Shown one piece after another: positions 23,348 to 56,577 of a DNA stretch of 64,000 nucleotides (position 1 is its first letter; each line of letters starts with the position of its first letter). The DNA is taken from positions 124,001 through 188,000 of IMG/VR virus record IMGVR_UViG_3300036853_000446. One strand, written 5' to 3'. The notes under the pieces are model-generated. The model was not told the origin of the DNA. It saw only the letters and a program-made list of their open reading frames with translations, and searched no databases. Both the position numbers and the translations under genes were made by a program.

Positions 23348-24010
23348 TCAGTGGTAGTCGACCTTCACACCGAGGGTCGCCCATGTCTTGCGAAACATGT
23401 CCAGGCTAATGAAGCGCCGCGCCCGCTCGTGGTTATCCCGCATCCAAGCGTAGAAGGTCTGCGCGTCCCGCTTCTTCTGCGGGTGGTAAGACGTGTCTTG
23501 GAAGAAGCCCGGCTTTCCGGGCGGCCCCTCCATGGCATGGTGATCGGTGATCCGGAAATCCAAGGGAGACGACACGACTTCGATGTAGCCCTTGTCACGT
23601 TGCGGGATCCGGAACTCGAAACTCTCCCCGTTCGGCTCGACGTCGATCGCCCTCAGGTCGGTCATCTCGATGGATATCTCCGTCGGAAAGTCCACTTGAA
23701 CGTCTGTGATAAACCGACAAATCGCGTCGAACCCGCCGCGGGACCCCTCGTCTACGAAAAACCCGCCCATACGCGCAAACCACTCATCGTGTTTGCCCTG
23801 ATACGAGTACGTCAACATAACCGTCATCTCGCGGCATTTCTTCCCGCGCTTCCCGGCATCCGTCAGGTCTGTGACGCGGAGCGAGTCGCTGTACCGGTGA
23901 ACCCGCACCTGGTCGTTCTGAAAGGTCTTGCCGAGCGGCAAACTGCCGGCCGTCAGGTAACGGCGGGCAACACGGTACCGCTGGACGACGCGGGCGACGA
24001 GAGAGGCCAT
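23348..24010 (-). CDS. hypothetical protein with RVV.RY / VARRYL leader
   Basis: MASLVARVVQRYRVARRYLTAG. Confidence 0.75.
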   Translation of the reverse strand: MASLVARVVQRYRVARRYLTAGSLPLGKTFQNDQVRVHRYSDSLRVTDLTDAGKRGKKCREMTVMLTYSYQGKHDEWFARMGGFFVDEGSRGGFDAICRFITDVQVDFPTEISIEMTDLRAIDVEPNGESFEFRIPQRDKGYIEVVSSPLDFRITDHHAMEGPPGKPGFFQDTSYHPQKKRDAQTFYAWMRDNHERARRFISLDMFRKTWATLGVKVDYH

Positions 24011-24042
24011 AACGGTCATGGGACGACAATAGAAAAAATCGG

Positions 24043-24111
24043 GGCTGCGGCGGGGAATCGAACCCCTCAAACCCCCTTCACAGAGGGGCCCACTTCCAAA
24101 GTAACCGCAGC
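24043..24111 (-). tRNA. trnH: tRNA-His(GTG), shortened D-arm
   Basis: GCTGCGG/CCGCAGC acceptor, CCCCT-CT GTG AA-GGGGG, TTCGATT. Confidence 0.6.
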
Positions 24112-24121
24112 ATACACCGAG

Positions 24122-24194
24122 TCAGAGTGGGAAGACTCGAACTTCCAACCCCTTGGCCCCCAGCCAAGTGCTCTGCCAATTGAGCTACACCCTG
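24122..24194 (-). tRNA. trnP: tRNA-Pro(GGG)
   Basis: CTTGG-CT GGG GG-CCAAG. Confidence 0.9.
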
Positions 24195-24306
24195 AGAATC
24201 CCATGCAGCCGCCGTTGAAGGCCGTCTGCATGGGTGGGATCGTCGTTCTTGGGCGCGACGATCCAGCGAGCCGTACGGGGATGGACCCAAGTCCATACGG
24301 CTCTCG

Positions 24307-25606: not shown

Positions 25607-26140
25607 TCACTGGTTATCGTACCGGCAGCTCGCGCAATCGGAGTCGCGCGGCTCATCTTCGATGCTGCCACAGCTGCACCCCGTCCAGCGGCCATGTGAG
25701 TGTGACCGTGAACCAGATGAACCCGATGAGCCAGACGAGCCCCCCGTGCCGACAGTGAATAGCCAGACGCTACGGTCGGTCCAGATCAAACGACCCAGTG
25801 TCACCTTCGAAGTCTGACCGCTCTTCTTGCGTACCGTGACTTGGTCCCCGGGACTACCAACGCTCGTCAGCCGAACGCCCCACGATCCGTCACGCAGCTT
25901 GGCCCACGTGGCATCTTCGCCGCCTCGACCAAGCTTGGTCATCCGCCGAATCTCGGCCTCGCTCGGCTCCGGGCCCTCGACGTAAGGGCCCTTCGATGCC
26001 ACCTCGTCCTGTGCCATCAGATCGTCAGCAAGGCGCCCGAGCTTCCTTGCCAGCTTGACCCTCGACGGGCTCGACGATTGGCAATAGGCGAGAATGCTCT
26101 TCAAACCGTCCTGCAGGTGCCGTGGCGAGCGGATCTTCAT
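25607..26140 (-). CDS. KIASP-leader protein, GS-linker and Cys-rich tail
   Basis: MKIRSPRHLQDGLKSILAY..PSR..LA..L..LA; C-terminal CSCG..CASC. Confidence 0.8.
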   Translation of the reverse strand: MKIRSPRHLQDGLKSILAYCQSSSPSRVKLARKLGRLADDLMAQDEVASKGPYVEGPEPSEAEIRRMTKLGRGGEDATWAKLRDGSWGVRLTSVGSPGDQVTVRKKSGQTSKVTLGRLIWTDRSVWLFTVGTGGSSGSSGSSGSRSHSHGRWTGCSCGSIEDEPRDSDCASCRYDNQ

Positions 26141-26215
26141 AATCCATGGCGTGCATCAAAAGAAATCTCGCGGAGAGAGACCGATTTGGAAGCGGAGCAT
26201 CCGGAGATTTCGAAG

Positions 26216-26428
26216 CTAGAACAGCCACATCGAATGGGAGATGGCCAGCATCCCGCATCTCGAGCACGAGGCGGACGACATTGCGCCTCCGTCTTCGTAG
26301 ATCTCCTCCACGCCCTCCCCGTCCCAAACGTGCCCGCAGGGACCACCTTTCGAGCATTCGCAAGCGCACTTCGCGTTGCCGGCGCCGCACGAGTGGATCA
26401 GCACGGGATCTTCAGTCGAATCTGCCAT
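26216..26428 (-). CDS. small Cys-rich protein
   Basis: Seven Cys plus His; CGGTGTA 10 nt upstream. Confidence 0.6.
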   Translation of the reverse strand: MADSTEDPVLIHSCGAGNAKCACECSKGGPCGHVWDGEGVEEIYEDGGAMSSASCSRCGMLAISHSMWLF

Positions 26429-26482
26429 GTGAGGATGTACACCGCGTCCCGCCGGTAATCCATTTGTCGTTCCATACGGATC

Positions 26483-26644
26483 ATGCTCATTGCAGTCATC
26501 CCGCTGGTTTTCACAATCGTTGGCCTGCTCATGTGGGTGCTCGCCTCGAACCCCCTCATCAAAGAAGCCGGCAGAATCATCTTCTTCGCCGCCTTTCTCG
26601 CGCTGATGTTTGCGTTCTCGAGCAAGACGCTGAGCGTCGGCTAA
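26483..26644 (+). CDS. 53-aa two-TM membrane protein (below ORF-track cutoff)
   Basis: MLIAVIPLVFTIVGLLMWVLASNPLIKEAGRIIFFAAFLALMFAFSSKTLSVG; TCCATTTGTCG upstream. Confidence 0.6.
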   Translation: MLIAVIPLVFTIVGLLMWVLASNPLIKEAGRIIFFAAFLALMFAFSSKTLSVG

Positions 26645-26711
26645 CCGGGCTCTGCTGACACCGCACGCGCGCCACATCACGGGTATCGCGCAGCGGGTCG
26701 CGGAACACGAG

Positions 26712-26784
26712 TCAAGATGGGGAGACTTGAACTCCCAACCCCTCCGCCCCGAACGGAGCGCTCTGCCAATTGAGCTACATCTTG
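26712..26784 (-). tRNA. trnP: tRNA-Pro(CGG)
   Basis: CTCCG-TT CGG GG-CGGAG. Confidence 0.92.
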
Positions 26785-26785
26785 G

Positions 26786-26858
26786 CGTCCCCGGAAGGAC
26801 TCGAACCTTCAATCGCCGGTTCCGCAAACCGGTGCTCTATCCATTGAGCTACGGGGAC
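26786..26858 (-). tRNA. trnR: tRNA-Arg(GCG)
   Basis: CCGGT-TT GCG GA-ACCGG; A20 in D-loop. Confidence 0.9.
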
Positions 26859-26864
26859 AAATCG

Positions 26865-26947
26865 TGCTGTCGAGAGGACTTGAACCTCCAAGGAGTTGCC
26901 CCCACCCGTACCTCAAACGAGCGCGTCTGCCTTTCCGCCACGACAGC
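26865..26947 (-). tRNA. trnL: tRNA-Leu(GAG)
   Basis: CTCGT-TT GAG GT-ACGGG, long variable arm. Confidence 0.88.
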
Positions 26948-26978
26948 ATAAACTTTTGATTGCCCACCACCGGGCAAG

Positions 26979-27527
26979 ATGAAGATGCATGACGCCCTCC
27001 TCGAGGACCTCCTGGACCACCGGCTCAACCCTTGTTACGACAAGATCCCCGGTTCTCCCTCGTATGTCCTGATTGACGACAACGCCGTAGAGATCAAGGC
27101 CCCCGTCCGCGTGTTTGTTCCGATGACAGAGGTCACCGACGACGTCGAGGAAAGAACGCTGCTTCTGATCAAGATGGCTGCCGAGAACGGAAGCATCGGC
27201 ATCGAGTGGGATGGATCGTTTCTATCGATCCACAATCATTTCGACACCGTGCATCTACCCTTCGACGTGGTCGTAAAGAATCCTGAGACCAAGATTGATC
27301 TCCCTCCAGACATCAAATACATCAAGCACCGAGATGTGACAGCCGACCGCTTTTACTGTCTCACGCGCAGCGATTTACTCGGGCGACTTCCGCGGTGCCC
27401 CGGCACTATCGCGCACGGTCTCAAGAGCCCAGACAAGCTCGGCTTTCTGATATTTAACCCGAAAGGGATCTTGACCGTCTTCTTCGAGCCGCAAGCGAAA
27501 GCCGTCGATATTCAGGCTCAGGCGTGA
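26979..27527 (+). CDS. hypothetical protein
   Basis: Clean 182-aa ORF between tRNAs. Confidence 0.6.
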   Translation: MKMHDALLEDLLDHRLNPCYDKIPGSPSYVLIDDNAVEIKAPVRVFVPMTEVTDDVEERTLLLIKMAAENGSIGIEWDGSFLSIHNHFDTVHLPFDVVVKNPETKIDLPPDIKYIKHRDVTADRFYCLTRSDLLGRLPRCPGTIAHGLKSPDKLGFLIFNPKGILTVFFEPQAKAVDIQAQA

Positions 27528-28540: not shown

Positions 28541-28990
28541 CTACGGCACGGTCACGCAGCGCACCTCGAGGCGCGCCTCATCAAACATCGCCTTTGCGGT
28601 TCGAAAGCCCTCCCCCCAGACCGGGTCGTCAAAATCAGGAGGGCTCGTGACGAGCGCCTTGATCCCGACCTGAACGATACCTCGCGCGCAGTCCACGCAC
28701 GGGAACAGCGTCGAGACGTACAGGGTGCAACCGTCGAGGCTCACGCCAACCCGCGCCGCGTTAAAAATGGCGTTACGCTCGGCGTGCTCAGTCCAGGCGT
28801 ACTTGGCAGGTCGCTCGTGCCGAGCCTCGACGGTGTCGTCGATGCCTCGCGGGAAGCCGTTATAGCCCGTCGCGCGCACCTCCTGATGGGGCCCGACGAC
28901 AACGCAGCCGACCTGCCTCGAGCGATCCTTGCTCCACCCAGCCAGCTGCTGGGCAAGCGCCATGAACTTGCGGTCCCAATTCGGGGTCAC
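28541..28990 (-). CDS. dCMP deaminase
   Basis: SKD..VGC, GYNGFP, HAERNAI, PCVDC. Confidence 0.93.
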   Translation of the reverse strand: MTPNWDRKFMALAQQLAGWSKDRSRQVGCVVVGPHQEVRATGYNGFPRGIDDTVEARHERPAKYAWTEHAERNAIFNAARVGVSLDGCTLYVSTLFPCVDCARGIVQVGIKALVTSPPDFDDPVWGEGFRTAKAMFDEARLEVRCVTVP

Positions 28991-29014
28991 GGGACCTGTT
29001 ACACCGGCGCATCG

Positions 29015-29422
29015 TCAGATTTCGAGTTTCAGCTCCACGACCCCGAGCGCCCGCTGGGCCTCCTCAAAGACCGCCTTCACATCGGAGGTGGGGCCCTTCA
29101 ACTCGAAGTCGATATTGCATCGGCAGACGAAACGCCCTTCGATTGTACTGAACATCGGCTCCGATTTCGAGACCACGCGATGCCGATGTGACATCAACCC
29201 CAGGGTGAGAAACATTCCCGACAGCTCGTGAACGTCGTTCGAGACAAACCGCAACGTGTCCGAACAGGATTGAATGTTGCCCTGAACGGTGCCGGCCGCG
29301 GAGACCTCGAGCAAGTACCGGTCAGGACCCAACTTTTTGATGGTGAGTTCGTACGGGTCGAAACTGTTCCCGACCATCGCCAGCTTCCGGCTTGCTACCC
29401 TTCTGGCGATGTGACTCGTCAC
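29015..29422 (-). CDS. hypothetical protein with RRVASR leader
   Basis: MTSHIARRVASRKLA; TCTCTTGTGC 14 nt upstream. Confidence 0.7.
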   Translation of the reverse strand: MTSHIARRVASRKLAMVGNSFDPYELTIKKLGPDRYLLEVSAAGTVQGNIQSCSDTLRFVSNDVHELSGMFLTLGLMSHRHRVVSKSEPMFSTIEGRFVCRCNIDFELKGPTSDVKAVFEEAQRALGVVELKLEI

Positions 29423-30691: not shown

Positions 30692-30767
30692 TGGAGCGAA
30701 CGAGGGGACTCGAACCCCCAACATCCACCTCGGCAAGGTGGCACTCTACCAGTTGAGTTACGTTCGC
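30692..30767 (-). tRNA. trnG: tRNA-Gly(GCC), encoded CCA
   Basis: CCACC-TT GCC GA-GGTGG. Confidence 0.93.
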
Positions 30768-30774
30768 AGAATCT

Positions 30775-31053
30775 TTAGTGGGCAGCCTCGATGCCCCCGA
30801 GCGCCCGCTCAAAGAGACTCTGGTAGCGGCGAAACAGCCCAGCGATGTCTTGGCAGTCGCTGTCAAACGACTTCGCCTCCTCAGGCAGCTCGACCTGCAT
30901 CCGAGTCTTCATCTCCTCGGCTTCGCCCGGCGCGAGGCCAGCATCCTCGATCAGGTGAAAGTCGTTGCAGCCAGGGTTGGCGAACTCGTCGCCGGCCCAG
31001 TCGAGCAGAACGACGAGCACTTTGAGGTCTGAAAGCTCGAGGTTGATTTGCAT
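30775..31053 (-). CDS. acidic hypothetical protein
   Basis: CGGTGTA 10 nt upstream. Confidence 0.65.
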   Translation of the reverse strand: MQINLELSDLKVLVVLLDWAGDEFANPGCNDFHLIEDAGLAPGEAEEMKTRMQVELPEEAKSFDSDCQDIAGLFRRYQSLFERALGGIEAAH

Positions 31054-31075
31054 CCCGAGCCATACACCGACGAGC

Positions 31076-31273: not shown

Positions 31274-31294
31274 GTCAGTCCTACTCAACGGACA

Positions 31295-36252: not shown

Positions 36253-36312
36253 AAATAGAACGTGACCGATGCCAGCCGAGCGTGCAAGCTTCCGAGGAGC
36301 ACCAAGGTCATG

Positions 36313-36383: not shown

Positions 36384-37556
36384 TTACAGAGAATCCATGA
36401 ACTGCTGCAGCGCCCGGGGGAGAGGCTTCCCGAGCACCACGGCCAGGAAGGACTCGGCAAAGTTTTCCTCCCACGATGTCGCCCCGTAGTCGGAAGCATA
36501 AACGCCGCTCTGATGCTCAGACACCGGAAACTCGACGTCGCCCGACACGTTCTTCATGGCGATCGCGTCGTGCAGGGCCTGCCAGACGCCGCTTTCCTTC
36601 TCGTCTCGGAATCGCTTGAGCAAGGGGATCTGCTTTCGCATCACCTCGCGCGGTGTTCTCTCCGCGTATTCACGGCTGCGCGGCGAGATGATGGTGTCCG
36701 GGTCATCCGGGTACTCCTCGCGCTGATGCAGCTCGAAGAGTTTCATGTATTCGTCGGCCGCCTTTTGACGCTCGGCCGGGGTAAACACGATCGTCTCGCC
36801 CTTCTCGTGAATCTTGTGGAAGCGTTCGAACTTCTCACCGCGGATGAATTTCGTGTGGTAGCGATGCCCGAATTCGTGGATGAGGGTCAGCACGCTGTTG
36901 CGTTCTGGCGTCGCGTACATGCTGAGCGTGATGGTGTCGGTCGCGTGGGCGTACGAGCCAGCCACGAGCCCACCCGAGCCAGGCCGCGGGTCATATGTGC
37001 CTGAAGGACGAAGGTCCTTGCGAATGAAGACCTTGCCGTAGAGAACCTCTGGGAACCTTCGGTGGACCAGTTCACTCGCTTTGTCGAGCGTCGCGACGGC
37101 TTCCGCCGTATCCGTTACGCCCTCTAGCGGGATGATCCGGAAAGGGCCGTGTTTGAACTCGTCGGCCTCGTCCCGCATCAGCTCCTGCACTTTAGGCAAG
37201 CCCTCGTCCAGCTGACGAAACCAATGATCAAACCACTGTTGGCCAATCGAGTAGAGGTCACGATGATGCTGAATGCCATAGATGGCATTGAACACTTCCT
37301 GAAGCTTTCCGACGAATTCCATGAAGAATTCCCTATCAGCGTGGTCGAGGTCAGGTAGCCATTCGGTGCGGACACTCAGGCGGTCACCGCCTAGGAAGAA
37401 CACCCCGAGGATCTTGCCAAAGGCACGAAACTCGTCCTCTGCCTGCTTCCACTTCTCGCCACGAATGAGGCGCTCGATTCCCTCGAGCATCGGGGCCAGT
37501 TGCGTCCGAGCGAGAAAACGTCGAACGACATTGGCGACCAGCGGTTCCAGCATCAT
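36384..37556 (-). CDS. Zincin metallopeptidase (anthrax-LF/MPTase-like) with V.RRFL leader
   Basis: LIHEFGHRYH, SDYGATSWEENFAESF; MLEPLVANVVRRFLAR. Confidence 0.8.
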   Translation of the reverse strand: MMLEPLVANVVRRFLARTQLAPMLEGIERLIRGEKWKQAEDEFRAFGKILGVFFLGGDRLSVRTEWLPDLDHADREFFMEFVGKLQEVFNAIYGIQHHRDLYSIGQQWFDHWFRQLDEGLPKVQELMRDEADEFKHGPFRIIPLEGVTDTAEAVATLDKASELVHRRFPEVLYGKVFIRKDLRPSGTYDPRPGSGGLVAGSYAHATDTITLSMYATPERNSVLTLIHEFGHRYHTKFIRGEKFERFHKIHEKGETIVFTPAERQKAADEYMKLFELHQREEYPDDPDTIISPRSREYAERTPREVMRKQIPLLKRFRDEKESGVWQALHDAIAMKNVSGDVEFPVSEHQSGVYASDYGATSWEENFAESFLAVVLGKPLPRALQQFMDSL

Positions 37557-37658: not shown

Positions 37659-38099
37659 TCATCTGCCGAACGGGCGGTGCTTCTGCTTCCAGAGTGCCTC
37701 CGCCGCGTCGGTATGTGAGGTTGCCGGGCGGAACTTCTGCCCTGAAATGCGCTCCGCCCAGGCGTACATCGCGGTCGCGAGCCCCTGCCGGCGAAACTCG
37801 GGATCGACCTCGATGGCCCCCTCGAAATCTTTCTCCGATGGGTCGCCGTTCCAAGGCCCATAGAACAGGTCGCCCACGACGCGCTCCCCATCGTCTGATG
37901 GTACCGTCGCAAGGATACTAAAGTCGTCGAAATCCGAAGACGGTTTACGTCGCCAGTAGAGGGTAAAGTCTTTGAACGTTGTCTCGCGTATGAACTTCGA
38001 TTTCTCCCGAGGGAAGTCCTTCGTCTTGGCCCGCCACTTCTCGGGGTTGTCGCTGAGACTGGCGAGATATCGCTGGGCAACGCGCGACAGTGTCGACAT
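37659..38099 (-). CDS. GNAT acetyltransferase with RVAQRYL leader
   Basis: IEVDPEFRRQGLATAMY motif A; MSTLSRVAQRYLAS. Confidence 0.8.
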   Translation of the reverse strand: MSTLSRVAQRYLASLSDNPEKWRAKTKDFPREKSKFIRETTFKDFTLYWRRKPSSDFDDFSILATVPSDDGERVVGDLFYGPWNGDPSEKDFEGAIEVDPEFRRQGLATAMYAWAERISGQKFRPATSHTDAAEALWKQKHRPFGR

Positions 38100-38106: not shown

Positions 38107-38949
38107 TTAGGCGGGGACGGTCTCATCCGACCTGTTCTCGACGCCGAGTCGGTCCCATCTTACCGTGAAGCCGTGCCCCGGCTTGTACTCGAGATACTGT
38201 TTCGCCACAAGCCAGGCGAGCCTCAGGACGAGCGTGATGGGTAGCGCGGCGAACGTTCCGAAGCCGAGCTGCGCAAAAAGCCCGCCGATCGCCGACTCGG
38301 GCATCGACGCGAGCAACTCCACGAGCGAGATACCCCCGGTGAAGCCCGCGACGATGCCGGGAATGTCCCAGGTGATCTCCAGGACCGAGATCCAGACGTA
38401 GATGTAAATGGCCGCGTAAACGGGCCGCCTCAGGGTCGGGATGTGCTTCCGAAACAGGTTGTCGATCGTCTCCGCGCCTTCACGAATCTTCGACAGTGCG
38501 CGCTGCAGCCACGGCACATCTTTAACCAGACGGCGGATGAGGTCGGTCAGTCCGGGCATCTTGTGCTGGTCGATGAAGAAGAGACTCAAAGGCAAATGCG
38601 ACGTCGCCTTGTGCAGCACGCTCATCAGGGCGCGCTTACCCTCGGCCATGGCGTCCTTGATGCCCCTGACCAGATTGGGCAGGCTCGCGTCCTCCAGGCC
38701 GAGGCCGCGCTTGATGGCAGCCCACGCCTCGGGCGCGCGTTTGAAGAGCCCGACAAGGCGCGAGACAGCGCTCGTGATCCCGGCGACGACTTCTTTTGAC
38801 GACGCGGTACGGGTCTCCCAGGCGGCCTCGACGAGGGCAACGAGCGCCCCTCTCGGCGGCAGACGGGAGGCAACACGCCCCGTTGGATAGGCCCGTTCGA
38901 CGGCGAGCCGGATGAAATACCGGTCCCTGACTCTCAGGCTGATGTCCAC
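38107..38949 (-). CDS. hypothetical protein, hydrophobic C-terminus, RVRDRY leader
   Basis: MDISLRVRDRYFIRLA..GRVAS. Confidence 0.7.
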   Translation of the reverse strand: MDISLRVRDRYFIRLAVERAYPTGRVASRLPPRGALVALVEAAWETRTASSKEVVAGITSAVSRLVGLFKRAPEAWAAIKRGLGLEDASLPNLVRGIKDAMAEGKRALMSVLHKATSHLPLSLFFIDQHKMPGLTDLIRRLVKDVPWLQRALSKIREGAETIDNLFRKHIPTLRRPVYAAIYIYVWISVLEITWDIPGIVAGFTGGISLVELLASMPESAIGGLFAQLGFGTFAALPITLVLRLAWLVAKQYLEYKPGHGFTVRWDRLGVENRSDETVPA

Positions 38950-39205: not shown

Positions 39206-39697
39206 GTGAACAAGATCGCGAGCGCCGGGGAGCTGCAGTCAGAGTTGAGACGGCTCCTGAACGAGGCGGTTGCACCGGGAGTCTCCCGCCGCGCAATGGC
39301 CGCCGAGCTGGTTGCGCTCGCCGGTCGGGTGGCGCGCGACAGGCCCTATCCCGAGCAGGACGTGCGCGGATCGGGCGAGTGGGCCGTCTATTTCGAGACC
39401 GAGGCACCGAAGACGATCCATCGGTGGAAATTTCACACCCAGGCGCAGGCGACGGACGAAGCCAAGAAAGCTCAGAAGGAGCAAGGCGGCTTCGTCACGG
39501 TCATGCGCAAGGGCCTCGACGTCGTCGAGGTGGGCCCCGGCGGCAAGGTCACGAAGAACGCCACGGTTCTGAACGTGGTGGCGCGCTACGTGGCTCGACA
39601 AATACCAACAATCAGAACAATTGCGGACAGCTCCGAATCCTGGGCTCGAACCAGGGACCTACGTGTTAACAGCACGTCGCTCTACCAACTGAGCTAA
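39206..39697 (+). CDS. KIASP-leader protein
   Basis: MNKIASAGELQSELRRLL..SRRAMAAELVALAGRVA; C-terminal NVVARYVAR. Confidence 0.8.
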   Translation: MNKIASAGELQSELRRLLNEAVAPGVSRRAMAAELVALAGRVARDRPYPEQDVRGSGEWAVYFETEAPKTIHRWKFHTQAQATDEAKKAQKEQGGFVTVMRKGLDVVEVGPGGKVTKNATVLNVVARYVARQIPTIRTIADSSESWARTRDLRVNSTSLYQLS

Positions 39698-44452: not shown

Positions 44453-44794
44453 TCAGCCTTTGCTTTTCTTGACCTTAACGATGTTCTTCTCGCTGGCGAT
44501 GTCGGGGGTGCCATGACGACCGCCCATGTTGAGGACCCATCCAGCGGGACCCTTCATCACGGCCTTGCCCGTATGTTCCTTGCCAAAGCGGTCGACGATC
44601 GTCACCCGATCGCCCCGGCCGATGCTGTCAACCAGGGCCTCGGGATCGTCGGAGGCTTCCTTGCCGATGACCTCATTCGCCAGGCGTTGTAGCTCGGAAG
44701 CGATCCGGGATCGGGATGGCCTCGCCGAGCGGGCATACGCGAGCAAGTCGTGAAGATCAGACTGGAGTTCCTGAGGTGAAGCGATCTTGTTCAT
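44453..44794 (-). CDS. KIASP-leader protein with small SH3-like cargo
   Basis: MNKIASPQELQSDLHDLLAYARSARPSRSRIASELQRLA; GDRVTIVDRFG. Confidence 0.82.
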   Translation of the reverse strand: MNKIASPQELQSDLHDLLAYARSARPSRSRIASELQRLANEVIGKEASDDPEALVDSIGRGDRVTIVDRFGKEHTGKAVMKGPAGWVLNMGGRHGTPDIASEKNIVKVKKSKG

Positions 44795-46711: not shown

Positions 46712-47078
46712 TCGCGAGCACATATCCCGGATTTTACTCATCGATGACGAGGATCTCATCGTGCGAGCCGTGCGTCGGATGCTCGAGGCCGAGACTCAAT
46801 TCGAGATCTGCTCCGCCTGTGACGGTGAGACCGGCCTCGTGGCATTTGAAACGGAGCCCCCGTTCGACGTCCTGATCACGGACATCCATCTACCGGATAT
46901 GTCTGGCACCACGCTAGCTCGAAAGCTTCGCATTCTGAAGCCGGACCTGAAGATCATTTTCATGTCGGGCGCCATCCCAACCGATATCGATCCGTCGGCG
47001 GGAACCCTAACGAAGCCCTTCCGCCACGATGACCTGATGCACGCTTTGGAAAACGCTTTGGAGTCAAGACGTCTCTAG
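46692..47078 (+). CDS. Single-domain CheY-like response regulator receiver
   Basis: ILLIDDE, LITDIHLPDMSG, IIFMSG, TKPF; start uncertain. Confidence 0.88.
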   Translation: MATTATDREHISRILLIDDEDLIVRAVRRMLEAETQFEICSACDGETGLVAFETEPPFDVLITDIHLPDMSGTTLARKLRILKPDLKIIFMSGAIPTDIDPSAGTLTKPFRHDDLMHALENALESRRL

Positions 47079-48077
47079 GTATCGGGCCGCCACGCGCCGA
47101 CTCGCGTTCGTGCGACGGTCGATCAAGGTGGCCGCGTGCTCGAACGTGCTCGCGTCCCATTCGTCCCAGTGGGGTAAACTCGCCAAGGCCACCTTACGGC
47201 TTCTCAAGACCTCGAGGACCTGTTCCACGGCATCCTCGACCGTGGCACTGATGCCCTTCACGTCGCAGTCCGTGGAGAACTGCGCGTAGAAATCTCGGAA
47301 AGAGTCAATTATATCGCGGCATTTGAAGACGGCATCTTCTAGGCGCGACGGGACCACCGCGGCGTCGTCATCGCTACTGACCGAAAGGGCGAGCAGCTCG
47401 TTGAGGCGTCCCGACTCTTTATCGAGTTCCTTGTACACGTCCATATACTTGCCGAACTCCACGCAAAGGCTTGTCAGACCCACGACGCTGATCAGCTTTT
47501 TTGCCGCGGTCGTGCGTTTGCTCAAACCTTTCAGTTTGGAACTCGCCCGTGACGCCTGCTCCAAGACGGCTTTTGAGCCTCGGACGATGTCCTGCATGCG
47601 CCGCTGTCTCTTGCCGGTCGTCGTCTTGACGGCCAACTCCGCAAAGTCGTGCAGCTCGTCCACGGTGTCAGCAAAGTCGTCCTTGAGATATTCACGCAGA
47701 TCGACCCGCCAGGAAAGATAGAGATGGCTGATTTCTCTGACCGTCCTCTCGAAAGCGGTCGTGGCACGTTGCTTGGCCTCTTTGATGGTGGCCAAGTCGA
47801 TGCGCCGCTGACTCGTGTCCGTCCCCACCTCCGTACGGTCGTTGACCCGCTTGCCCTCGAGGACCTCTTTGGCCACGTTGATCTCGACCATCATCGTTGG
47901 GCTCCCACCGCGGTCGGGATGGTGCTCTTTAGCTTTCGATTTCCACGCCTTGTTGATCTCGGCATCCGAGGGGCTCGAGCCAGGCGGGAAGCCGAGCACG
48001 TCCTTGGCCTCCTCGAGCGTCATTGCCGTCCGGAGCCATCGGGCGGCGGTCTGGTAAGCGTCATGGCGGTGTGGCAT
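47064..48077 (-). CDS. DnaJ J-domain protein with AARWL leader and RVAARYL tail
   Basis: AKDVLGF..INKAWKSKAKEHHPDRGG. Confidence 0.85.
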   Translation of the reverse strand: MPHRHDAYQTAARWLRTAMTLEEAKDVLGFPPGSSPSDAEINKAWKSKAKEHHPDRGGSPTMMVEINVAKEVLEGKRVNDRTEVGTDTSQRRIDLATIKEAKQRATTAFERTVREISHLYLSWRVDLREYLKDDFADTVDELHDFAELAVKTTTGKRQRRMQDIVRGSKAVLEQASRASSKLKGLSKRTTAAKKLISVVGLTSLCVEFGKYMDVYKELDKESGRLNELLALSVSSDDDAAVVPSRLEDAVFKCRDIIDSFRDFYAQFSTDCDVKGISATVEDAVEQVLEVLRSRKVALASLPHWDEWDASTFEHAATLIDRRTNASRRVAARYLETS

Positions 48078-48864: not shown

Positions 48865-51843
48865 TCACTCTCCGCGGCCCATGGCGAAATCATGCAGGTC
48901 TTCCGCGTCCTTCTTCTCCTGGTCCTGCCGCATGACGATCTCGAGGCGCCGCACGGCCTCCGCGTGGTTCGTCGGGTCGCGCTCCATGCCGATGAAATGC
49001 ATCCCCTCGAGCACGGCCGCGTGGAGCGTAGTACCCGAGCCGGCGTACATGTCCAGCACCGTGCCGCCTTTTTGTGTGACGAGCTTGACCAACCATCTGA
49101 TGAGCGCCAAGGGCTTCAACGTGGGGTGTTGAATTTCGAACTCGCCGCAGCCGGCTTCTTTACGGTTGGCCTTCGGAATATAGCGGAATGGCACGCCGCC
49201 CTGCGCGTCGAACTGAGTAAAGAACCGATCCACGCCGCCCTCGTCCGTGAGCCGGGTTCCGGCTTTGAACTGAAAATCAGCCATGTCCGTTCCCCTTTCC
49301 GCTAAGCCCTTGTTTTCAGTCGAGCCACCATTCGGGTGATGTCCTGACTCGACCCCCTGCTCCCGTAGCGCCCTGACGGGGCATCCTTCCACGCAAATCC
49401 AGTCTTCTACCGTTTCCAGGCCGTCGGGACCCGCGTAGCGCTGACTAGGCGTTTCCTTGGGCTGCCACCCGTCGTCGTTCATTATTCCGAGGGCCTCTAA
49501 CCGCCGCTTGCCACCGGGTGGGGTTTTGACGTCCTTCAGCCCGACGCGCTCACAGCCCGGGGCGTGAATGAACACAGCGTTCGGAGGCCATCTGCCTTTG
49601 CTAGCATCCTCGTCGGATTTGTCGGCCTCGAACTGGGTGAAGAAGCGAGAAGCACCGCCGGCATCCTGGTACGTGACATGATCATGCGCAGCCTGTGCAC
49701 CATCTGAGAAGGCGCCATTCTTCCCCTCGTAATTGAAATCGACGTGAACTTCCGAGGGGTCGTTGTTTGGGGAAGTGTATGAGCTGCGACGCTCGCCGCT
49801 CTGATCGTCGAGGGCCTTCACCGGACATCCTTCCACGCAGATCCAGTCGGCCACTTCCTCCTTCCCATCGAATCCAGCGTAACCGAGTTCGTCGCCTTCG
49901 ATGATGTTGTCCCCGTGCCACCCCCCTGTGTAGCCTGCCTTTGTACGGCCTTTACCCGTACAAAGAGACTTAGTGGTCACACGCTTAATGCCGACGCGCT
50001 GGCACCCCGCTCGACCTTCAACGTCTGGGACGTGTTCGAATACGGCGTTCGAAGGCCACCTGCCTTTGCTCTGGTCCTCGTCGGGTTTGTCGGCTTCGAT
50101 TTGGGTAAAAAACCGCGAGGCGCCCCCCTCATCGTCGTAGAGGGGGCCCTGGGTGTTGTGACCGAGATCCCCTCGTGTGTAACCACCACCACGGCTGTAC
50201 GTGGTTGGATAGTTGCCCGAGGATCGCCGATTACCGCTCTGATCGTCGAGGGCCTTCACCGGACATCCTTCCACGCATTCCCAGGCCTCCGTCTCTTCAA
50301 GGCCGTCCGAACCAACGTGGCTCGTTGTCTGCTGGTACTCAAAGCTCCCGTAGACGACCCTCGAGGGGGCCACATACTTCTTGTCCGGTACAGGTTCGCC
50401 TTTGGCTGCCGCCGCATGTGAACCTTTGATCCTCTTCGACCCGATGCGCTGGCAACCCGGGCGTCCGTCAGCATCGGGGACGTGCTCGAGCAGGACGTTG
50501 CTCGGCCACCTACCTTTGCTCGCATCCTGAGAATCTGCCTCGATCTGCGTGAAGAACCGCGAGGCCCCGCCGGCATCCGCGTAGACTTTGCTCAGGTGCG
50601 TTCGCTCCCCGAGGAACGTGGACGTAGGGTTCATCTCCGTGCCCGGGTGCTCGTGGCTCACGTCCGGGTCCGCGCGCCCCGTCAGCGTGCTCGGCCGATC
50701 GCCGCTCATGGCGTCTAGGGCACGTACAGGGCATCCTTCGGCGCATTCCCAGGCCTCGACCGTTTCGTTGCCGTCGTCATCGCCATAGCCACCACCACGT
50801 TCCTGAACCTGTGGCTGCCAGCCATCGTCGTTCATTTTGCCCAACGCACTATGCCGACGAGTTCCCTGCATGATGGCCGCAACCTTTTTTGACCCGACAC
50901 GCTGGCAACTCTCGGAATGTTCGAGCACGACGTTGCTCGGCCACCTTCCGCCGGCCTTGACCTCGTTGGCGCCGCTGAGGTCGCTGTCGTTCTTCCACGA
51001 TTTATCCCGGCTGCCGCCCTTCTCACGGATGGCATCGACGCCCTTCTTGTGGGTCTCGAAATCTTCCTGCGAGGCGTGCCGCACGCGGGTGGCGTCGATG
51101 TTGAGCCCGCCCGTCCCGTGCTTCAGGACGTTCGACGCGAGCGTGCCCTCGAGCGGCTTGCGGAAGACCAAAATTGGCTCAAATGCAGGCTTGAGTCCAC
51201 TCCCCCACCCAGACCAATGTTTGGCCTCGTCGGATGCTGGCGCGTACTGGTGGTGATATTTCTCGACCTGCTCTGGGTCCTTCATCCAAGGCCGAGAGAA
51301 CCCCACAGCGTGAGGGCCCGATTCGGAGAGATTTACGACGCTAGAGTTGTTACCCCGATCAGCAAATTCCTCGTGACCCGGCTTGATCCCAACCAGCTGC
51401 GTGCGCGTCTTCCCGAACCGATTGTCGATGCCTTTGCTTATATCATGGCTCTTTGGCATGCCCTGACCCTGAATCCATTGCAATATCGGATAGTTACGAC
51501 CGATCGTGTCGCGGCATTCGAACCCCGCCATTCGAAGCCCGATGCTAATCAGGTCGAACGTTCTTGTTCCTCCGAACGAGAGCACGTGACCGCCGGGCTT
51601 GAGCACGCGGTAGACCTCGCGCCAAACGGCAACGCTCGGAATGCTCCATTTTTGGCCCATGAAGTCATTTCCAGTGTCGAGCGTGCATCCGAGCACGTAC
51701 GCAAAGATGTCCTCCGGCGACGGGTCCTTGTTCCCGAGCCCATATGGCGGATCTACAACGGTGGCATCTATTGAATCCGAAGGAAGGTCACGGAGAAGGT
51801 CGAGACAATCACCGAGAAGAATCTGATCGAGAGGGAGGTCCAC
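48865..51843 (-). CDS. Beta-class N4/N6 DNA methyltransferase, 992 aa, with internal repeats
   Basis: DPPYG N-terminal; HPTLKP..LDMYAGSGTT C-terminal. Confidence 0.9.
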   Translation of the reverse strand: MDLPLDQILLGDCLDLLRDLPSDSIDATVVDPPYGLGNKDPSPEDIFAYVLGCTLDTGNDFMGQKWSIPSVAVWREVYRVLKPGGHVLSFGGTRTFDLISIGLRMAGFECRDTIGRNYPILQWIQGQGMPKSHDISKGIDNRFGKTRTQLVGIKPGHEEFADRGNNSSVVNLSESGPHAVGFSRPWMKDPEQVEKYHHQYAPASDEAKHWSGWGSGLKPAFEPILVFRKPLEGTLASNVLKHGTGGLNIDATRVRHASQEDFETHKKGVDAIREKGGSRDKSWKNDSDLSGANEVKAGGRWPSNVVLEHSESCQRVGSKKVAAIMQGTRRHSALGKMNDDGWQPQVQERGGGYGDDDGNETVEAWECAEGCPVRALDAMSGDRPSTLTGRADPDVSHEHPGTEMNPTSTFLGERTHLSKVYADAGGASRFFTQIEADSQDASKGRWPSNVLLEHVPDADGRPGCQRIGSKRIKGSHAAAAKGEPVPDKKYVAPSRVVYGSFEYQQTTSHVGSDGLEETEAWECVEGCPVKALDDQSGNRRSSGNYPTTYSRGGGYTRGDLGHNTQGPLYDDEGGASRFFTQIEADKPDEDQSKGRWPSNAVFEHVPDVEGRAGCQRVGIKRVTTKSLCTGKGRTKAGYTGGWHGDNIIEGDELGYAGFDGKEEVADWICVEGCPVKALDDQSGERRSSYTSPNNDPSEVHVDFNYEGKNGAFSDGAQAAHDHVTYQDAGGASRFFTQFEADKSDEDASKGRWPPNAVFIHAPGCERVGLKDVKTPPGGKRRLEALGIMNDDGWQPKETPSQRYAGPDGLETVEDWICVEGCPVRALREQGVESGHHPNGGSTENKGLAERGTDMADFQFKAGTRLTDEGGVDRFFTQFDAQGGVPFRYIPKANRKEAGCGEFEIQHPTLKPLALIRWLVKLVTQKGGTVLDMYAGSGTTLHAAVLEGMHFIGMERDPTNHAEAVRRLEIVMRQDQEKKDAEDLHDFAMGRGE
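49200..50950 (-). repeat. Four tandem ~140-150 aa modules in the methyltransferase
   Basis: GRWP(S/P)N x4, WxCxEGCPV x4, GGASRFF x3 plus GGVDRFF. Confidence 0.9.
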
Positions 51844-52897: not shown

Positions 52898-53481
52898 GTA
52901 TAGTCGCCGCCACGATGGCGCGCGATCGGCAGAATCCTGGGCCCGTGATGAACCGTAAAGAGCGGCGGCGACTCAAGGTCACCCACGGGCAGCAGCTCGA
53001 CCGGATGCTGGCCGAACGAAAGTGTGCGGCGTGCACGGGATGCTGCACGGTGCTGGCCATTGAGGAACTCGATAAACCTGCGGGTGTTCCCTGTCAGCAC
53101 CTCAGTAGCGACGGCGGGGGCTGCGGCATCTACGAGACCAGGCCCAAAGCCTGTCGCGAGTACGACTGTGGTTGGCGGCTAGGTGTCGGCACGCTCGAGC
53201 AGAGGCCCGACCGCATGGGCGTCGTGATGAGCCCGATCGCCCCGGGCTTACCGGGCCACCCGGGTGCAGTCGTGCACGAGCTGTGGCCGGACGCTTTCGA
53301 CGATGCCCAGGCGTTTTTGGCAGACGTGGCGCGGGGCTTGGTTCTGCTTCTCATCCGCGATGATCTCATCAAACGAGTGATGGGACCCGAGGACAGGATT
53401 CACGGCATGAAGTCCGAGATGGAAGTGCTTCGTCGATTGAACGCAGAGACGCGGGCGGCTAAAGGGCTCGGCACCAAGTAG
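52894..53481 (+). CDS. YkgJ-family CxxCxxCC Zn/Fe-chelating protein
   Basis: CAACTGCC..CQHL..CGIYETRPKAC..YDC. Confidence 0.85.
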   Translation: MSIVAATMARDRQNPGPVMNRKERRRLKVTHGQQLDRMLAERKCAACTGCCTVLAIEELDKPAGVPCQHLSSDGGGCGIYETRPKACREYDCGWRLGVGTLEQRPDRMGVVMSPIAPGLPGHPGAVVHELWPDAFDDAQAFLADVARGLVLLLIRDDLIKRVMGPEDRIHGMKSEMEVLRRLNAETRAAKGLGTK

Positions 53482-53530
53482 GGCGCGCCAGGATAATGTC
53501 TCTATCAGGCGTCACCTTGTCGAGAAGGTG

Positions 53531-54826
53531 ATGAACAGAAAGGCAATGGCATTGAAGGTCGCGCGGGCGTGGTTGCGACGTGCTGCGGTCGTGCCCGATG
53601 ACCTCTTTGATCGATATTCACATCAATTGAAGGGGATCCTTTCCGGTCCCACCTCAGGGCCACGCAGCGTCGCACAGATGATTCGCAAGGGCATCGAGCC
53701 GTTGTTCCATCAGTTCGTGCATGATCTCCGCGAGACTGGGCTTACACGAAACCTCCTCGCGCATGTCGTTCGCAATCTCAATGCCGACCTGAAGATCCTG
53801 AAAGAGATTGAGACGAACCTCGAAAACCTGCACATCGCAATGACCTGCCCGCAGGGTGACGACAAATATTTGCCCGAGCACGAGATCAAGTGCCGCCTTG
53901 CCAGTGTGTTGAAAGATTGGTTCGACAACAGCGTCAAAACAATCGACCAAGCCCTTTTAGAGAACTGGTCGGTACGCTCCATAGGTGCAACCGGCCTCGT
54001 TGACCAGATCCTGAAGCAGGCCAGCCCGAAAGAATTGTCGATGCTCGGGGCTGTTGCGAACGGAGATGAGTCGACGGAGGTCCTTCAGCAACTGCGCGCC
54101 TTCAACGTGCGCGCTGTCGACCCCCTCGCCAAGAAACTCGTCATCAAAAACTGGCTCGGCGACGACAATTGGTGGCTCGGCCTGTTTGACCAAGTGAAGC
54201 GTAATCTCACCCACGAATCCGCCACCGATAGACCCGATGAGCAATTCGACCTTCACGGGATGAAGGTCGTCGTCGACGACGATACGGTGAACGCGGCTGA
54301 TATCCGTGCCTATGTTAAATACTTCGATATCGCCTATCAGAGCCTGAAGTCGAGGCGACTCCACTCGGCGTGGTACGGCGACATACTGATCGATTGCAAA
54401 GGCTGCGGGGGAGTCATCGATACGGGCGCAAATATTGGTGGCCACTTCAACGTCGGAAAGGATCAGGTCACGATCTTTGCTCGACCCGGCCCGACGATCA
54501 GCTACATTGTGGTACATGAGCTTGGACACCGGTACTGGTTCAAGAGCTTGTCGCGAGGCCAGCGCGGCAAGTTCGAATCCCTCGTAAAGGTGAAGGGCGA
54601 CGGCGCCAAGCCGGTCCTTCCCGTCTCTGACTACGGTGCTTCAAACATCGACGAAGCGTTTGCCGAGGCATTCGCCTGGTATGTCCTCCGCCGGAAGATG
54701 AACGCCGATCAAGAGGCTTCATTCAAGGCGGTCCTGCTCGACAAGGATCGCCGCTCCGTCACGTCCAAAACGGCGTCGAGATCGACGAGCGCCGCAAGAC
54801 GAGTCAGACGACCTCGATCTTCCTGA
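53531..54826 (+). CDS. Zincin metallopeptidase (LF/MPTase-like) with KVARAWL leader
   Basis: VVHELGHRYW, SDYGASNIDEAFAEAF. Confidence 0.8.
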   Translation: MNRKAMALKVARAWLRRAAVVPDDLFDRYSHQLKGILSGPTSGPRSVAQMIRKGIEPLFHQFVHDLRETGLTRNLLAHVVRNLNADLKILKEIETNLENLHIAMTCPQGDDKYLPEHEIKCRLASVLKDWFDNSVKTIDQALLENWSVRSIGATGLVDQILKQASPKELSMLGAVANGDESTEVLQQLRAFNVRAVDPLAKKLVIKNWLGDDNWWLGLFDQVKRNLTHESATDRPDEQFDLHGMKVVVDDDTVNAADIRAYVKYFDIAYQSLKSRRLHSAWYGDILIDCKGCGGVIDTGANIGGHFNVGKDQVTIFARPGPTISYIVVHELGHRYWFKSLSRGQRGKFESLVKVKGDGAKPVLPVSDYGASNIDEAFAEAFAWYVLRRKMNADQEASFKAVLLDKDRRSVTSKTASRSTSAARRVRRPRSS

Positions 54827-55604
54827 CCTTCACATTCCGTGGGTTGAACACGGCGATCTCCGGCACGCCTTGGACGAGGTTGGTGCCGTAGAAAAAGACC
54901 GAGTCATACCCTTTTGATCGCGCTTTACGAGCCTGGCTCGTGCTCTTCGTGACCAGCGGATTGCTGACAGTCACCGCCACCGTATAGACCTTCGGGCGGT
55001 ACGTTTTAGAATCCAGGCCGAGCGCGTCGAGGTTGTCATAAACATAGTCGGGAGCGCCCGTAGAGGAATTCATCAACTCGTCGAGCACCGAGTCCGTCTC
55101 GGACCCGAGGGGCTTCACTTTGCTGCCGATGATGTATGCGGCCAGGTCGCTCACGGCGTTGGGGTCGACGCCGAGGTAGTCCTCGAAGCCGACGAGGTCG
55201 ACATGTCCCTCTCCCGGGCCCGGATTCTCTCGCCAGAAACCGGCATCCTGGAGGGCGCGCGTCCACCCGCCGTCTCCGTGCTCGACGAGCATCTCGAGGA
55301 ATCTGCCGGCGGCCGGTTTCCTCCGCTTCAGGTCCGCGACGATCGTGGGCGAGAAGCCTATGTTACGGTTCGCGTAGGCGTACTCGCCGGCAACCCGCTT
55401 GCTCGGGGTCAGGAAGATCCCTCTGCCGTAATAGCTGTCGACCAGTTCGTCGCGGCTCTGACCCATGTCGAAGCTGCGAAAGAGCCGCGTCGTGCCGTGG
55501 TAAAGGGTCACCGGATGGCCCGTGCGAAGGCCCTCCAGATGGTACTCGACGAGAGGATCTACGGTCTCGCGCGCGACCCGGCGATCGTAATCGTAGGCCA
55601 GCAC
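54804..55604 (-). CDS. ADP-ribosyltransferase-like protein with YDYDRR leader
   Basis: LYHGT, GRGIFLT, A.EYA, GYDSV, EIAVFNP. Confidence 0.75.
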   Translation of the reverse strand: MLAYDYDRRVARETVDPLVEYHLEGLRTGHPVTLYHGTTRLFRSFDMGQSRDELVDSYYGRGIFLTPSKRVAGEYAYANRNIGFSPTIVADLKRRKPAAGRFLEMLVEHGDGGWTRALQDAGFWRENPGPGEGHVDLVGFEDYLGVDPNAVSDLAAYIIGSKVKPLGSETDSVLDELMNSSTGAPDYVYDNLDALGLDSKTYRPKVYTVAVTVSNPLVTKSTSQARKARSKGYDSVFFYGTNLVQGVPEIAVFNPRNVKVRKIEVV

Positions 55605-55608
55605 GGCT

Positions 55609-56577
55609 TCAAACCAAGAGCTGGAGAAGGTCCCGCTCCGATGGCAAGAGCAGCACCTTGCCGAGCGCCCCGCGGTCGACGGCGAGCTTCAGACGCTCGA
55701 TGACCTCGTCGTCCAGATACTGCTTCGCCAGGTTCCGCATGAGGCTACGGCGCTCGCCGTTCTTGTTGAGCCAAGCGAGATACCGCGATCGATTCATCCC
55801 GCCTTCGCCCCCGCTCCGATGACTCGCGTCGTTCCAGGCCGCGATAATCTGCTCCTCCGTCATGCCGCCGGCTTTGCCCTCGATATAGATCCAGGCCCAG
55901 GGCTCGCCTGCCGGGCCGAGCAACAGGGGGTTGCTCTTGAACTTCCGCTCGATCTCGTTCCACAGGGCCCTGTCGTCCGGTCTCGGTTCGTGCTCGTGGT
56001 GCACGCTGTCGCCGAATTCCGGGTCGTCACGGATCTCCTGCCGTCGTGACCGGCTGATGAGGACGTCCTTGATGCGCATCGTAAATCCGTTGGCCATGTA
56101 GTGAATGGCCTGGCCCACGTTGTTATCCCCGGAGAGCGCGTGTCTCTGAAGCATCGCCGTATAATTGTTCCAGGCCTCCTCCACGACGGGCAGCGGGATC
56201 TTCCGCTTGCCGGCCATCGAGAGACTAAAGATGCGCGAGCCAATGGCATTAGCGATCGGCCTGAGCTTCGACAGCGTGTTGTGTTTGATGAAGGGTCGCA
56301 GCTCTTCGATGGTCTTGCCTTCGATATCGCCCGGCGTGCCCGCCTCCTCCATGCTGATGAGCGCCTGCAGCCCGATCGACAGGTTCATGTCGTCCCGGGT
56401 GAAGGCCCGTCGGATGAACGCTCGTCGGGTGAGAGCCTTGTGGGTGGATACCTCCCGGGTCGAGGCCTCTCGCAGGAACGCCTGAACGATGCTGGCGATC
56501 CGGACTCGCACCGGCACGGCGGCCAGAATCGTTCGAGATAGCTGCAGGGCGTCGGAGGCGAGCGCTTGGCGGGTCAT
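55609..56577 (-). CDS. Possible divergent sigma-factor-like protein with RIAS..FLREAS N-terminus
   Basis: Region-2-like VEEAW..AIHYM...RIKDVL..RSRR; region-4-like GMTEEQII; weak resemblance. Confidence 0.45.
   Translation of the reverse strand: MTRQALASDALQLSRTILAAVPVRVRIASIVQAFLREASTREVSTHKALTRRAFIRRAFTRDDMNLSIGLQALISMEEAGTPGDIEGKTIEELRPFIKHNTLSKLRPIANAIGSRIFSLSMAGKRKIPLPVVEEAWNNYTAMLQRHALSGDNNVGQAIHYMANGFTMRIKDVLISRSRRQEIRDDPEFGDSVHHEHEPRPDDRALWNEIERKFKSNPLLLGPAGEPWAWIYIEGKAGGMTEEQIIAAWNDASHRSGGEGGMNRSRYLAWLNKNGERRSLMRNLAKQYLDDEVIERLKLAVDRGALGKVLLLPSERDLLQLLV

Follow-up and report, generated by a model that had tools for sequence, protein, structure and literature searches.

Why should otherwise unrelated proteins of a single very large phage carry the same short peptide at their ends? 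This question is raised by a window of 64,000 nucleotides, bases 124001-188000 of the 407,634-bp IMG/VR contig IMGVR_UViG_3300036853_000446. An earlier note on this stretch had proposed that an amphipathic peptide of the type R-V-A-x-R-[YFW]-L serves as a tag at both N- and C-termini. This proposal is borne out, since the copies are strongly biased towards protein ends and their carriers belong to unrelated families. The tag is a clade-specific, protein-level and position-independent terminal peptide that marks a subset of accessory proteins. Its predicted function is that of a portable short linear docking peptide, and we infer that one common partner reads it.

In what follows, coordinates marked 'window' count from the first base of the window and those marked 'genome' from the start of the contig. 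The contig has a guanine-plus-cytosine (GC) content of 60.5% and encodes proteins rich in Arg and Ala; CheckV estimates the completeness of the record at 86%. Judged by the capsid protein, the closest cultured phages are Tunturiibacter phage Tunturi_5 (49% identity; 58% GC) and Bacillus phage G (40% identity; 30% GC), which were used as control genomes. Judged by the terminase, the nearest relatives are uncultured IMG/VR contigs of 170-450 kb, plus LR745208.1. Two relatives were compared whole, G001 (452 kb, 52% GC) and G002 (398 kb, 48% GC, with terminal repeats). A simple codon-bias gene caller was applied to the genome, the relatives and the controls.

The earlier note had pointed to the Arg/Ala-rich background expected at this GC content, and the tag is clearly enriched over it. 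In a six-frame translation of the whole genome, RVA.RYL has 6 matches, against 0.0097 expected from amino-acid composition. Each lies inside a long open reading frame (ORF) on the minus strand, four of them near the start, at residues 5-15, and the other two close to the stop, 3-6 residues away. When 1800 permuted orders of these residues are compared, RVA.RYL comes first (6 matches; runner-up 2; mean 0.023). The relaxed pattern [RK][VI][AV].[RK][YFW] occurs 11 times in the first 25 residues of proteins of this genome, 4 times in the last 25 and 3 times in the interior, corresponding to a 31-fold N-terminal enrichment (p=5e-9). The enrichment is also observed at 48-52% GC, with N-terminal, C-terminal and interior counts of 8/0/4 in G001 (16-fold) and 13/0/5 in G002 (21-fold), p ranging from 5e-9 to 8e-6 across the three genomes. 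The same counts are 0/0/0 in Tunturi_5 and 0/1/6 in Bacillus phage G. A scoring matrix trained solely on the N-terminal tags of G002 and used at its strictest threshold, 14, retrieves 9 sites in this genome (6 N-terminal, 3 C-terminal, 0 interior); on the controls, it gives interior matches only, or none. An unsupervised reduced-alphabet scan places [RK][VI]A.[RK] first among 1000 N-terminal patterns. Finally, every synonymous codon of Arg, Val, Ala and Tyr/Phe is represented at the tag positions, so that it is the peptide, rather than a nucleotide signal, that is under selection. The tag is confirmed as real, far above chance expectation.

The consensus may be written [LS]-[AS]-x-[RK]-[VI]-[AV]-x-R-[YF]-[LKR], about 10 residues. 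N-terminal copies mostly begin at residues 3-12, and C-terminal copies (4-8 instances) end 1-12 residues before the stop; some further tags are internal in fusion proteins. Tandem tags are found in the window gene 23348-24019 and in the genome gene 354027-355160, and other proteins are tagged at both ends. About 25 otherwise unrelated accessory proteins of this genome are carriers. They comprise a type IB topoisomerase with a tag at each end, a GNAT acetyltransferase, two J-domain proteins (one with an N-terminal tag, the other with a C-terminal one), a 2H phosphoesterase with Acb1-like similarity, a family of zincin-like proteins and many ORFans. BLAST between carrier families gives no similarity outside the tag, and most carriers have no match in Pfam, PHROGs and NCBIfam searches. 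Within a 19-member family whose full-length identity falls to about 30%, the tag is the best-conserved stretch of the N-terminal region. No tag was found on the terminase, the portal, the replication proteins or the tail proteins, as far as these were identified.

The topoisomerase illustrates both the placement and the predicted structure of the tag. Both flanking tags are kept in G001. In G002, L031, L033, L034 and LR745208.1, the enzyme is part of longer ORFs and the tags are therefore located at domain junctions. A related-locus search with the topoisomerase as sole query found nothing. In the AlphaFold2 model of the enzyme, the tags (residues 3-11 and 257-270) form short helices with a predicted local distance difference test (pLDDT) score of 33-58, against more than 80 for the core, and neither helix is packed on the core. 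Such low-confidence helices, detached from a confident core, are as expected of a docking peptide. The tag is thus predicted to be a short flexible helix, unpacked from the enzyme core.

The ten peptides quoted in the earlier note all exist where it had placed them; scored with a matrix, three are strong and two moderate, the five others being weak or degenerate:

window 23948..24004, minus strand: strong tandem double tag (RVVQRY then RVARRYL), residues 6-24, scores 24.2 and 23.1
window 38058..38096, minus strand: strong N-terminal tag STLSRVAQRYLAS, residues 2-14 of the GNAT gene 37659-38099, score 27.2
window 47070..47108, minus strand: strong C-terminal tag NASRRVAARYLET of the J-domain gene 47064-48077, score 24.7
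window 37506..37544, minus strand: moderate N-terminal tag PLVANVVRRFLAR, residues 5-17 of the 390-residue gene 36384-37556, score 11.5
window 29375..29413, minus strand: moderate candidate N-terminal tag HIARRVASRKLAM of gene 29015-29422, score 11.9, no aromatic residue
window 39572..39598, plus strand: weak NVVARYVAR in the KIASP-like gene 39206-39697, score 10.6
window 38902..38937, minus strand: weak N-terminal instance LRVRDRYFIRLA of gene 38107-38949, score 8.3
window 56461..56502, minus strand: weak instance RIASIVQAFLREAS, residues 26-39 of gene 55609-56577, score 7.4
window 53552..53587, plus strand: weak, degenerate N-terminal tag LKVARAWLRRAA of a zincin-like gene (about 53528 to 54826), score 5.3
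window 48024..48050, minus strand: weak, N-terminal tag-like TAARWLRTA of the J-domain gene 47064-48077, score 1.3

The double tag belongs to a 223-residue ORFan without Pfam or PHROG match. The N-terminal tag of the GNAT protein is kept in two orthologues; a third is devoid of it and has a tag-like C-terminal end, AAVLGRFLR. Among the J-domain proteins, NASRRVAARYLET stops 1 residue short of the last residue of its protein, and the paralogue at genome 383241-384332 has its tag at the N-terminus instead. TAARWLRTA, at the other end of the window J-domain protein, is not significant alone; its position corresponds to that of SRVATRYRV in the paralogue at 383241. The gene that carries PLVANVVRRFLAR is a paralogue of tagged genes at genome 352924-355160, and this form matches the G001 tags SLVANVVERYK and PLVAAVVRRYK. 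HIARRVASRKLAM lies within its protein only if a GTG start at 29422 is used, the gene caller having chosen an ATG at 29377. In LKVARAWLRRAA, Ala replaces the second Arg; the peptide directly precedes a segment homologous to the N-termini of the paralogues at genome 325352-327019 and 327049-328749, which have C-terminal tags instead (KVAERYL and TVVDRWL, respectively, the latter unmatched by the patterns of the six-frame search). LRVRDRYFIRLA has RYFIRLA in common with the N-terminus of the genome gene 226531-228165, and RIASIVQAFLREAS misses both core Arg residues. NVVARYVAR is 32 residues ahead of the stop, hence not truly terminal, and is of doubtful relevance.

The earlier note had also likened the tag to the last helix of a second module, KIASP, and had seen in it a possible minimal recognition element. 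KIASP is N-terminal, about 44 residues long, and reads M-x-K-I-A-S-P-x-[ED]-L … P-S-R … L-A-x-R-V-A. At least 14 ORFs of this genome and 8 of G002 carry it, and the window contains the following copies:

window 44645..44794, minus strand: KIASP module (helix-loop-helix ending L-A-x-[ER]-V) of the 113-residue gene 44453-44794
window 22744-22893, 25994-26143, 42659-42808, 43399-43548 and 45600-45749, minus strand: further KIASP copies
window 39206-39355, plus strand: further KIASP copy

A KIASP profile search of 1.84 billion representative proteins gives 690 clusters at 50% identity, 438 of them at E <= 1e-10. In nearly all clusters, the module occupies residues 1-47 of small proteins (45-280 residues), and its conservation ends sharply after L-A-x-R-V-A-[GA], the rest of the protein being hypervariable. 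This sharp end is compatible with a processing site, without proving one. AlphaFold2 predicts a confident 44-residue helix-loop-helix, for which Foldseek finds no significant match in the PDB (best E about 2). Neither Pfam nor PHROGs nor NCBIfam gave a match for KIASP, and the profile has no match in Tunturi_5 and phage G. The resemblance noticed earlier is limited to the six residues L-A-x-R-V-A and does not extend beyond them, the invariant R-[YF] of the tag being absent from KIASP. The link with KIASP is only partly supported: none of 150 KIASP representatives carries the tag, which does not speak for a shared minimal recognition element. KIASP is a large unannotated N-terminal family, separate from the tag, and the two may be viewed as alternative labels, which fits the absence of co-occurrence. 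Several proteins have, behind a tag or KIASP, a third short conserved module that reads roughly E-H-P-S-E-E-A-R-K-x-Y-L-K-E-H-P-K-A-D-P-x-x-H-T-V. It is seen at genome 238761-239423 (after KIASP), at 195762-197114 and 30709-31320 in G001, and at 153317-154732 and 268949-271990 (three copies) in G002.

What, then, might read the tag? The leading reading, which we hold tentatively, is that of a procapsid-targeting signal for effectors that would be packaged and co-injected. It is ranked first because of the position of tagged proteins in the head module, of a connection with polyvalent proteins, and of the parallel between KIASP and the internal proteins of phage T4. In this genome, the large terminase (genome 99143-101152, from PHROG searches) is flanked by tagged genes, and the head module is arranged in the following order:

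genome 93672-95525, minus strand: portal (PHROG search)
genome 90952-93558, minus strand: 868-residue protein, after the portal
genome 88287-89822, minus strand: prohead serine protease, 511 residues (PHROG search)
genome 86520-88163, minus strand: 547-residue protein in the scaffold position, highly acidic and predicted to be disordered
genome 84874-85752, minus strand: 292-residue HK97-type major capsid protein (PHROG search)

In L031, L033, L034 and LR745208.1, the ORF that includes the tag-flanked topoisomerase stands between the portal and prohead protease genes, a slot held here by the 868-residue protein. In L031, the topoisomerase and a long C-terminal part are fused as one 1400-residue ORF, the junction of which shows, in order, a basic stretch, an acidic stretch, SLNYK and a tag. 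The composite of acidic stretch, SLNYK and tag is also the N-terminus of the 868-residue protein, in this genome and in L022. This protein has a second tag-like site in its interior, at residue 583, behind a lysine-rich block. Finally, the acidic protein in the scaffold position contains a tag-like helix at residues 87-100. Its sequence is of low complexity, with long poly-Asp/Glu and poly-Gln repeats, and its Atlas model has a pLDDT of 0.44.

According to this proposal, the tag would dock, during head assembly, on an internal component of the procapsid, whether scaffold-like, portal-proximal, an extension of the protease or the capsid protein. Tagged enzymes (topoisomerase, GNAT, 2H phosphoesterase, zincin-like peptidases, J-domain proteins) and ORFans would thereby be packaged, then injected along with the DNA, and would act ahead of phage gene expression. 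The J-domain carriers may be imagined as being injected alongside in order to recruit host Hsp70. Small hypervariable cargo would bear other labels, namely the KIASP hairpin and possibly also a YDYDRR motif described below, much as the T4 internal proteins bear their capsid-targeting sequence (CTS). As to the receptor, the clade-specific extension of the prohead protease is a candidate, and the link to this protease suggested in the earlier note is compatible with the gene order. The C-terminal 215 residues or so of this protease, about residues 296-511, are missing in the homologues of Tunturi_5 (287 residues) and phage G (300 residues). Prediction of a complex between the capsid protein and the tag peptide returned the verdict 'no answer', which counts neither way on binding. 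Neither the scaffold-like protein nor the protease had a match in sequence searches of the PDB. Searches of the genome with Peptidase_S77 and Terminase_6N gave no match, the former being uninformative, as its control was silent everywhere.

Precedents for such a signal are the CTS of IPI-III and Alt in T4 and the N-terminal packaging signal of P1 DarB. In these systems as here, a short conserved terminal peptide is found on unrelated or hypervariable proteins of one phage, and the downstream cargo is of the anti-defence or host-takeover kind. The KIASP proteins, with a conserved leader followed by a hypervariable body, are in this respect close to the T4 internal proteins. However, no sequence similarity exists with either precedent, the present tag is also used at C-termini and domain junctions, and its carriers are far more numerous (about 25, plus at least 14 KIASP proteins). 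Moreover, in contrast with the T4 CTS, no protease cleavage site is defined here and the tag is known from genes alone.

The connection with polyvalent proteins is best seen in G002, where a 955-residue fusion places the topoisomerase after an LPD1 ('large polyvalent protein-associated') domain and a tag marks the point where they join. Iyer et al. (2017, PMC5512222) predict that the polyvalent proteins of phages, of which 2H, GNAT and metallopeptidase domains are characteristic, are packaged in the capsid and injected. Here, the same domains are found (2H phosphoesterase, GNAT, zincin-like peptidase, LPD1), in the fused form in G002 and, in relatives, beside head genes. In the present genome, by contrast, most of these domains are encoded singly by small genes that each have a terminal tag, and there is no MuF anchor. 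The MuF domain is the usual head anchor of polyvalent proteins; it was not found in a family search of this genome. Polyvalent proteins have 2-15 effector-type domains and an LPD in one polypeptide, an arrangement seen only in the 955-residue fusion of G002. Because they are single-domain proteins, the carriers studied here resemble components of polyvalent proteins rather than members of the group. They could be 'unbundled' polyvalent proteins, with one label per piece. To our knowledge, no tags have been described for polyvalent proteins.

Several observations weigh against procapsid targeting. Gene order is the only link of the carriers to virions. Many carriers sit among transfer RNA (tRNA) genes and in early-looking regions, outside the head module. 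The T4 system has nothing that corresponds to the C-terminal tags, and no consensus cleavage motif could be defined behind the tags. Tunturi_5 and phage G have a homologous capsid protein, portal and protease yet no tag, so that the receptor would need to be clade-specific. Lastly, the clade possesses a full-length ClpX whose next gene downstream is tagged in 5 of 7 genomes, indicating another reader.

This other reader, which the earlier note had not considered, leads to a second explanation, possible though on balance unlikely, in which the tag would be an XB-like anchor for the zinc-binding domain of the phage (or host) ClpX, by analogy with the tail of the adaptor SspB. The outcome would be either tethering for timed degradation or ClpX-driven unfolding and remodelling. 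Since ClpP gave no match in a family search of this genome, degradation would be served by the host ClpP. In a variant of this model, tagged or KIASP proteins would be adaptors delivering bound host targets to ClpXP. The gene concerned is

genome 366008-367258, minus strand: full-length ClpX (NCBIfam equivalog)

It scores above both NCBIfam equivalog cut-offs (NF003745, 437 bits for a cut-off of 359) and encodes an N-terminal CxxC...CxxC zinc-binding domain (CSFC...CDGC) as well as a ClpP-docking-type loop, LGFG. ClpX is kept in G001-G004, G006 and G007, and also in phage G, where ClpP is directly upstream; like the tag, it is missing from Tunturi_5. At least some of the tagged genes that directly follow clpX are non-orthologous, as judged by BLAST among this genome, G001 and G002, and clpX is about 9 kb from the cluster of the tagged topoisomerase in all three complete genomes. 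ClpX recognition signals, as Flynn et al. reportedly found in 2003, are usually N- or C-terminal. The XB tail of SspB binds ClpX's zinc-binding domain and is effective at any position of the chain (PMC12373786); by itself, it causes ClpXP-dependent loss of a fused reporter (PMC12373786; PMC9963277). The E. coli SspB sequence terminates in …PALRVVK, and several tags contain ALRVA, SLRVA or ERVVK. Both peptides have a short R-V-V/A core usable at termini or elsewhere in the chain, and the same genomes encode a ClpX with a zinc-binding domain, adjoining tagged genes. Tandem or two-ended tags would moreover match dimeric zinc-binding domains. However, the likeness to XB is restricted to R-V-[VA] plus a variable preceding residue. 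The key leucine of XB is not conserved in the tags, nor is the K, and the invariant R-[YF] of the tag is absent from XB. SspB is a dedicated adaptor, whereas the tag carriers are enzymes, and binding of the tag to ClpX is hypothetical. In addition, phage G has ClpX and ClpP and no tag, a degradation tag would be hard to rationalise on late head-module proteins, and the 44-residue KIASP hairpin would be superfluous for a degron. Procapsid targeting and ClpX docking could also be combined.

It is more doubtful that the tag is a self-association or hub-binding helix, which would gather the enzymes in one complex or condensate, attach to a hub of the host (DnaK, for instance) or, as the amphipathic helix of an RIIa/AKAP-type docking pair, engage KIASP as its docking domain. 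Hydrophobic residues of the tag are paired every four residues (LV..VV..YL), tags are frequently repeated in tandem or placed at each end, the carriers include J-domain proteins, and helix-loop-helix is a general architecture of docking and dimerisation domains. On the other side, the KIASP model is without significant structural match in the PDB, as mentioned above, Hsp70 gave no match in a family search of this genome, and KIASP and tag genes have no genomic link except co-occurrence in the clade. Furthermore, R, V, R and Y/F are strictly conserved, and one specific pocket is therefore more likely than generic helix bundling.

A private multi-label sorting system would be broader and is still less probable. 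Several labels, namely RVAxRY, KIASP, YDYDRR and C-terminal tails found in relatives, would each be read by a phage-encoded machine, and cargo would be threaded unfolded into procapsids or would act as ClpXP adaptors. The second N-terminal motif, M-x(1-4)-[YH]-D-Y-D-R-R, starts about 11 otherwise different proteins of this genome. A reduced-alphabet pattern for it gives 15 N-terminal matches vs 14 interior ones (p=3.5e-8). Its carriers include:

window 18166-18672, 35505-36140 and 46457-46711, plus strand: YDYDRR-motif proteins
window 54804-55604, minus strand: YDYDRR-motif protein
genome 89827-90183, minus strand: YDYDRR-motif protein adjoining the prohead protease

In G002, 29 proteins terminate in [ST]-L-W-D-H-L plus 2-6 residues (p about 1e-21), with varying synonymous codons; examples are genes 28824-29321, 36201-36884 and 53219-61305. 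In G001, about 12 proteins have a C-terminal L-D-R-I-L followed by an acidic/aromatic tail. The TLWDHL and LDRIL tails are further terminal labels in the clade. In phage G, 31 proteins have in common a C-terminal I-N-Y-W-K-E-N-D-R-Y-L-A-K-I-L (e.g. 26153-27432, 352560-357261). This set is probably a paralogue family and not a portable tag, because many of its members are tandem genes of similar length.

That the peptide is non-functional, a by-product of composition, of a nucleotide signal at gene starts or of paralogue ancestry, is very improbable and already effectively refuted: although the genome is Arg/Ala-rich at 60% GC and some carriers are paralogous, the enrichment (6 observed vs 0.01 expected, first of 1800 permutations) persists at 48-52% GC and is absent at 58% GC in Tunturi_5, all synonymous codons are used at each position, and tags are also found at C-termini and internal junctions of clearly unrelated folds.

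Each component of that explanation was rejected on its own grounds: a GC or composition artefact by the permutations, the relatives at other GC contents and the Tunturi_5 control, an mRNA- or DNA-level signal by the variation of synonymous codons, and a simple paralogue N-terminus by the unrelated families of the carriers. A twin-arginine (Tat) signal peptide, in which S/T-R-R-x-F-L-K precedes a hydrophobic h-region and an AxA site, was also rejected, as RR is not conserved, no hydrophobic stretch stands behind the tag and some copies are C-terminal. Neither a PCNA/clamp-binding box nor a membrane-targeting helix fits the sequence pattern and its context. As regards import into a phage nucleus, no RNA polymerase subunit was found in 6 large proteins scanned (5 of the 7 largest), and the replication proteins are untagged; chimallin was not searched for.

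Some other features of the record may be mentioned. The 30 tRNA genes of the window, all on the minus strand at window 16248-40650, are interspersed with small ORFs, several of which bear the tag or KIASP. A 992-residue ORF (window 48865-51843, minus strand) resembles phage DNA methyltransferases, with 33-40% identity to numerous actinophage methylases. The major capsid protein is extremely conserved, with more than 100 clusters at 84-93% identity and more than 2000 homologues at E<=1e-10. Between LR745208.1 and this genome, it is 83% identical, the terminase only 45%. The first 139 bases of the contig are repeated as its final 139, which suggests circular closure of the assembly, the IMG/VR entry being linear.

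Terminal address peptides are known in several systems: the T4 internal proteins, P1 DarB, encapsulins, microcompartments and ClpX substrates. Encapsulins and bacterial microcompartments also use short N- or C-terminal peptides on unrelated enzymes. The microcompartment peptides are amphipathic helices attached through a linker; the encapsulin shell shares the HK97 fold with the phage capsid protein. This is an analogy only, since there is no sequence similarity and no shell gene besides the phage capsid. Nothing matching the tag was found in Pfam, PHROGs, NCBIfam or the literature searched, and we know of no description of one conserved peptide on dozens of unrelated proteins across an uncultured clade of huge phages. 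The sequence of the tag appears to be new, and so do its occurrence at either end as well as at junctions, its distribution over dozens of unrelated proteins and its coexistence with other terminal motifs in the clade.

If the tag is a packaging label, the sequence alone would predict which unknown genes encode injected first-strike effectors, a list that would include the topoisomerase, the Acb1-like phosphoesterase and the J-domain proteins, and very large capsids could be loaded with foreign proteins by means of this natural handle. Should it instead anchor proteins to ClpX, a proteolysis or unfolding programme under phage control would come to light, as would natural counterparts of engineered XB-based degraders. 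In either case, about 5-10% of the genes in an abundant phage lineage now fall into a functional group open to testing.

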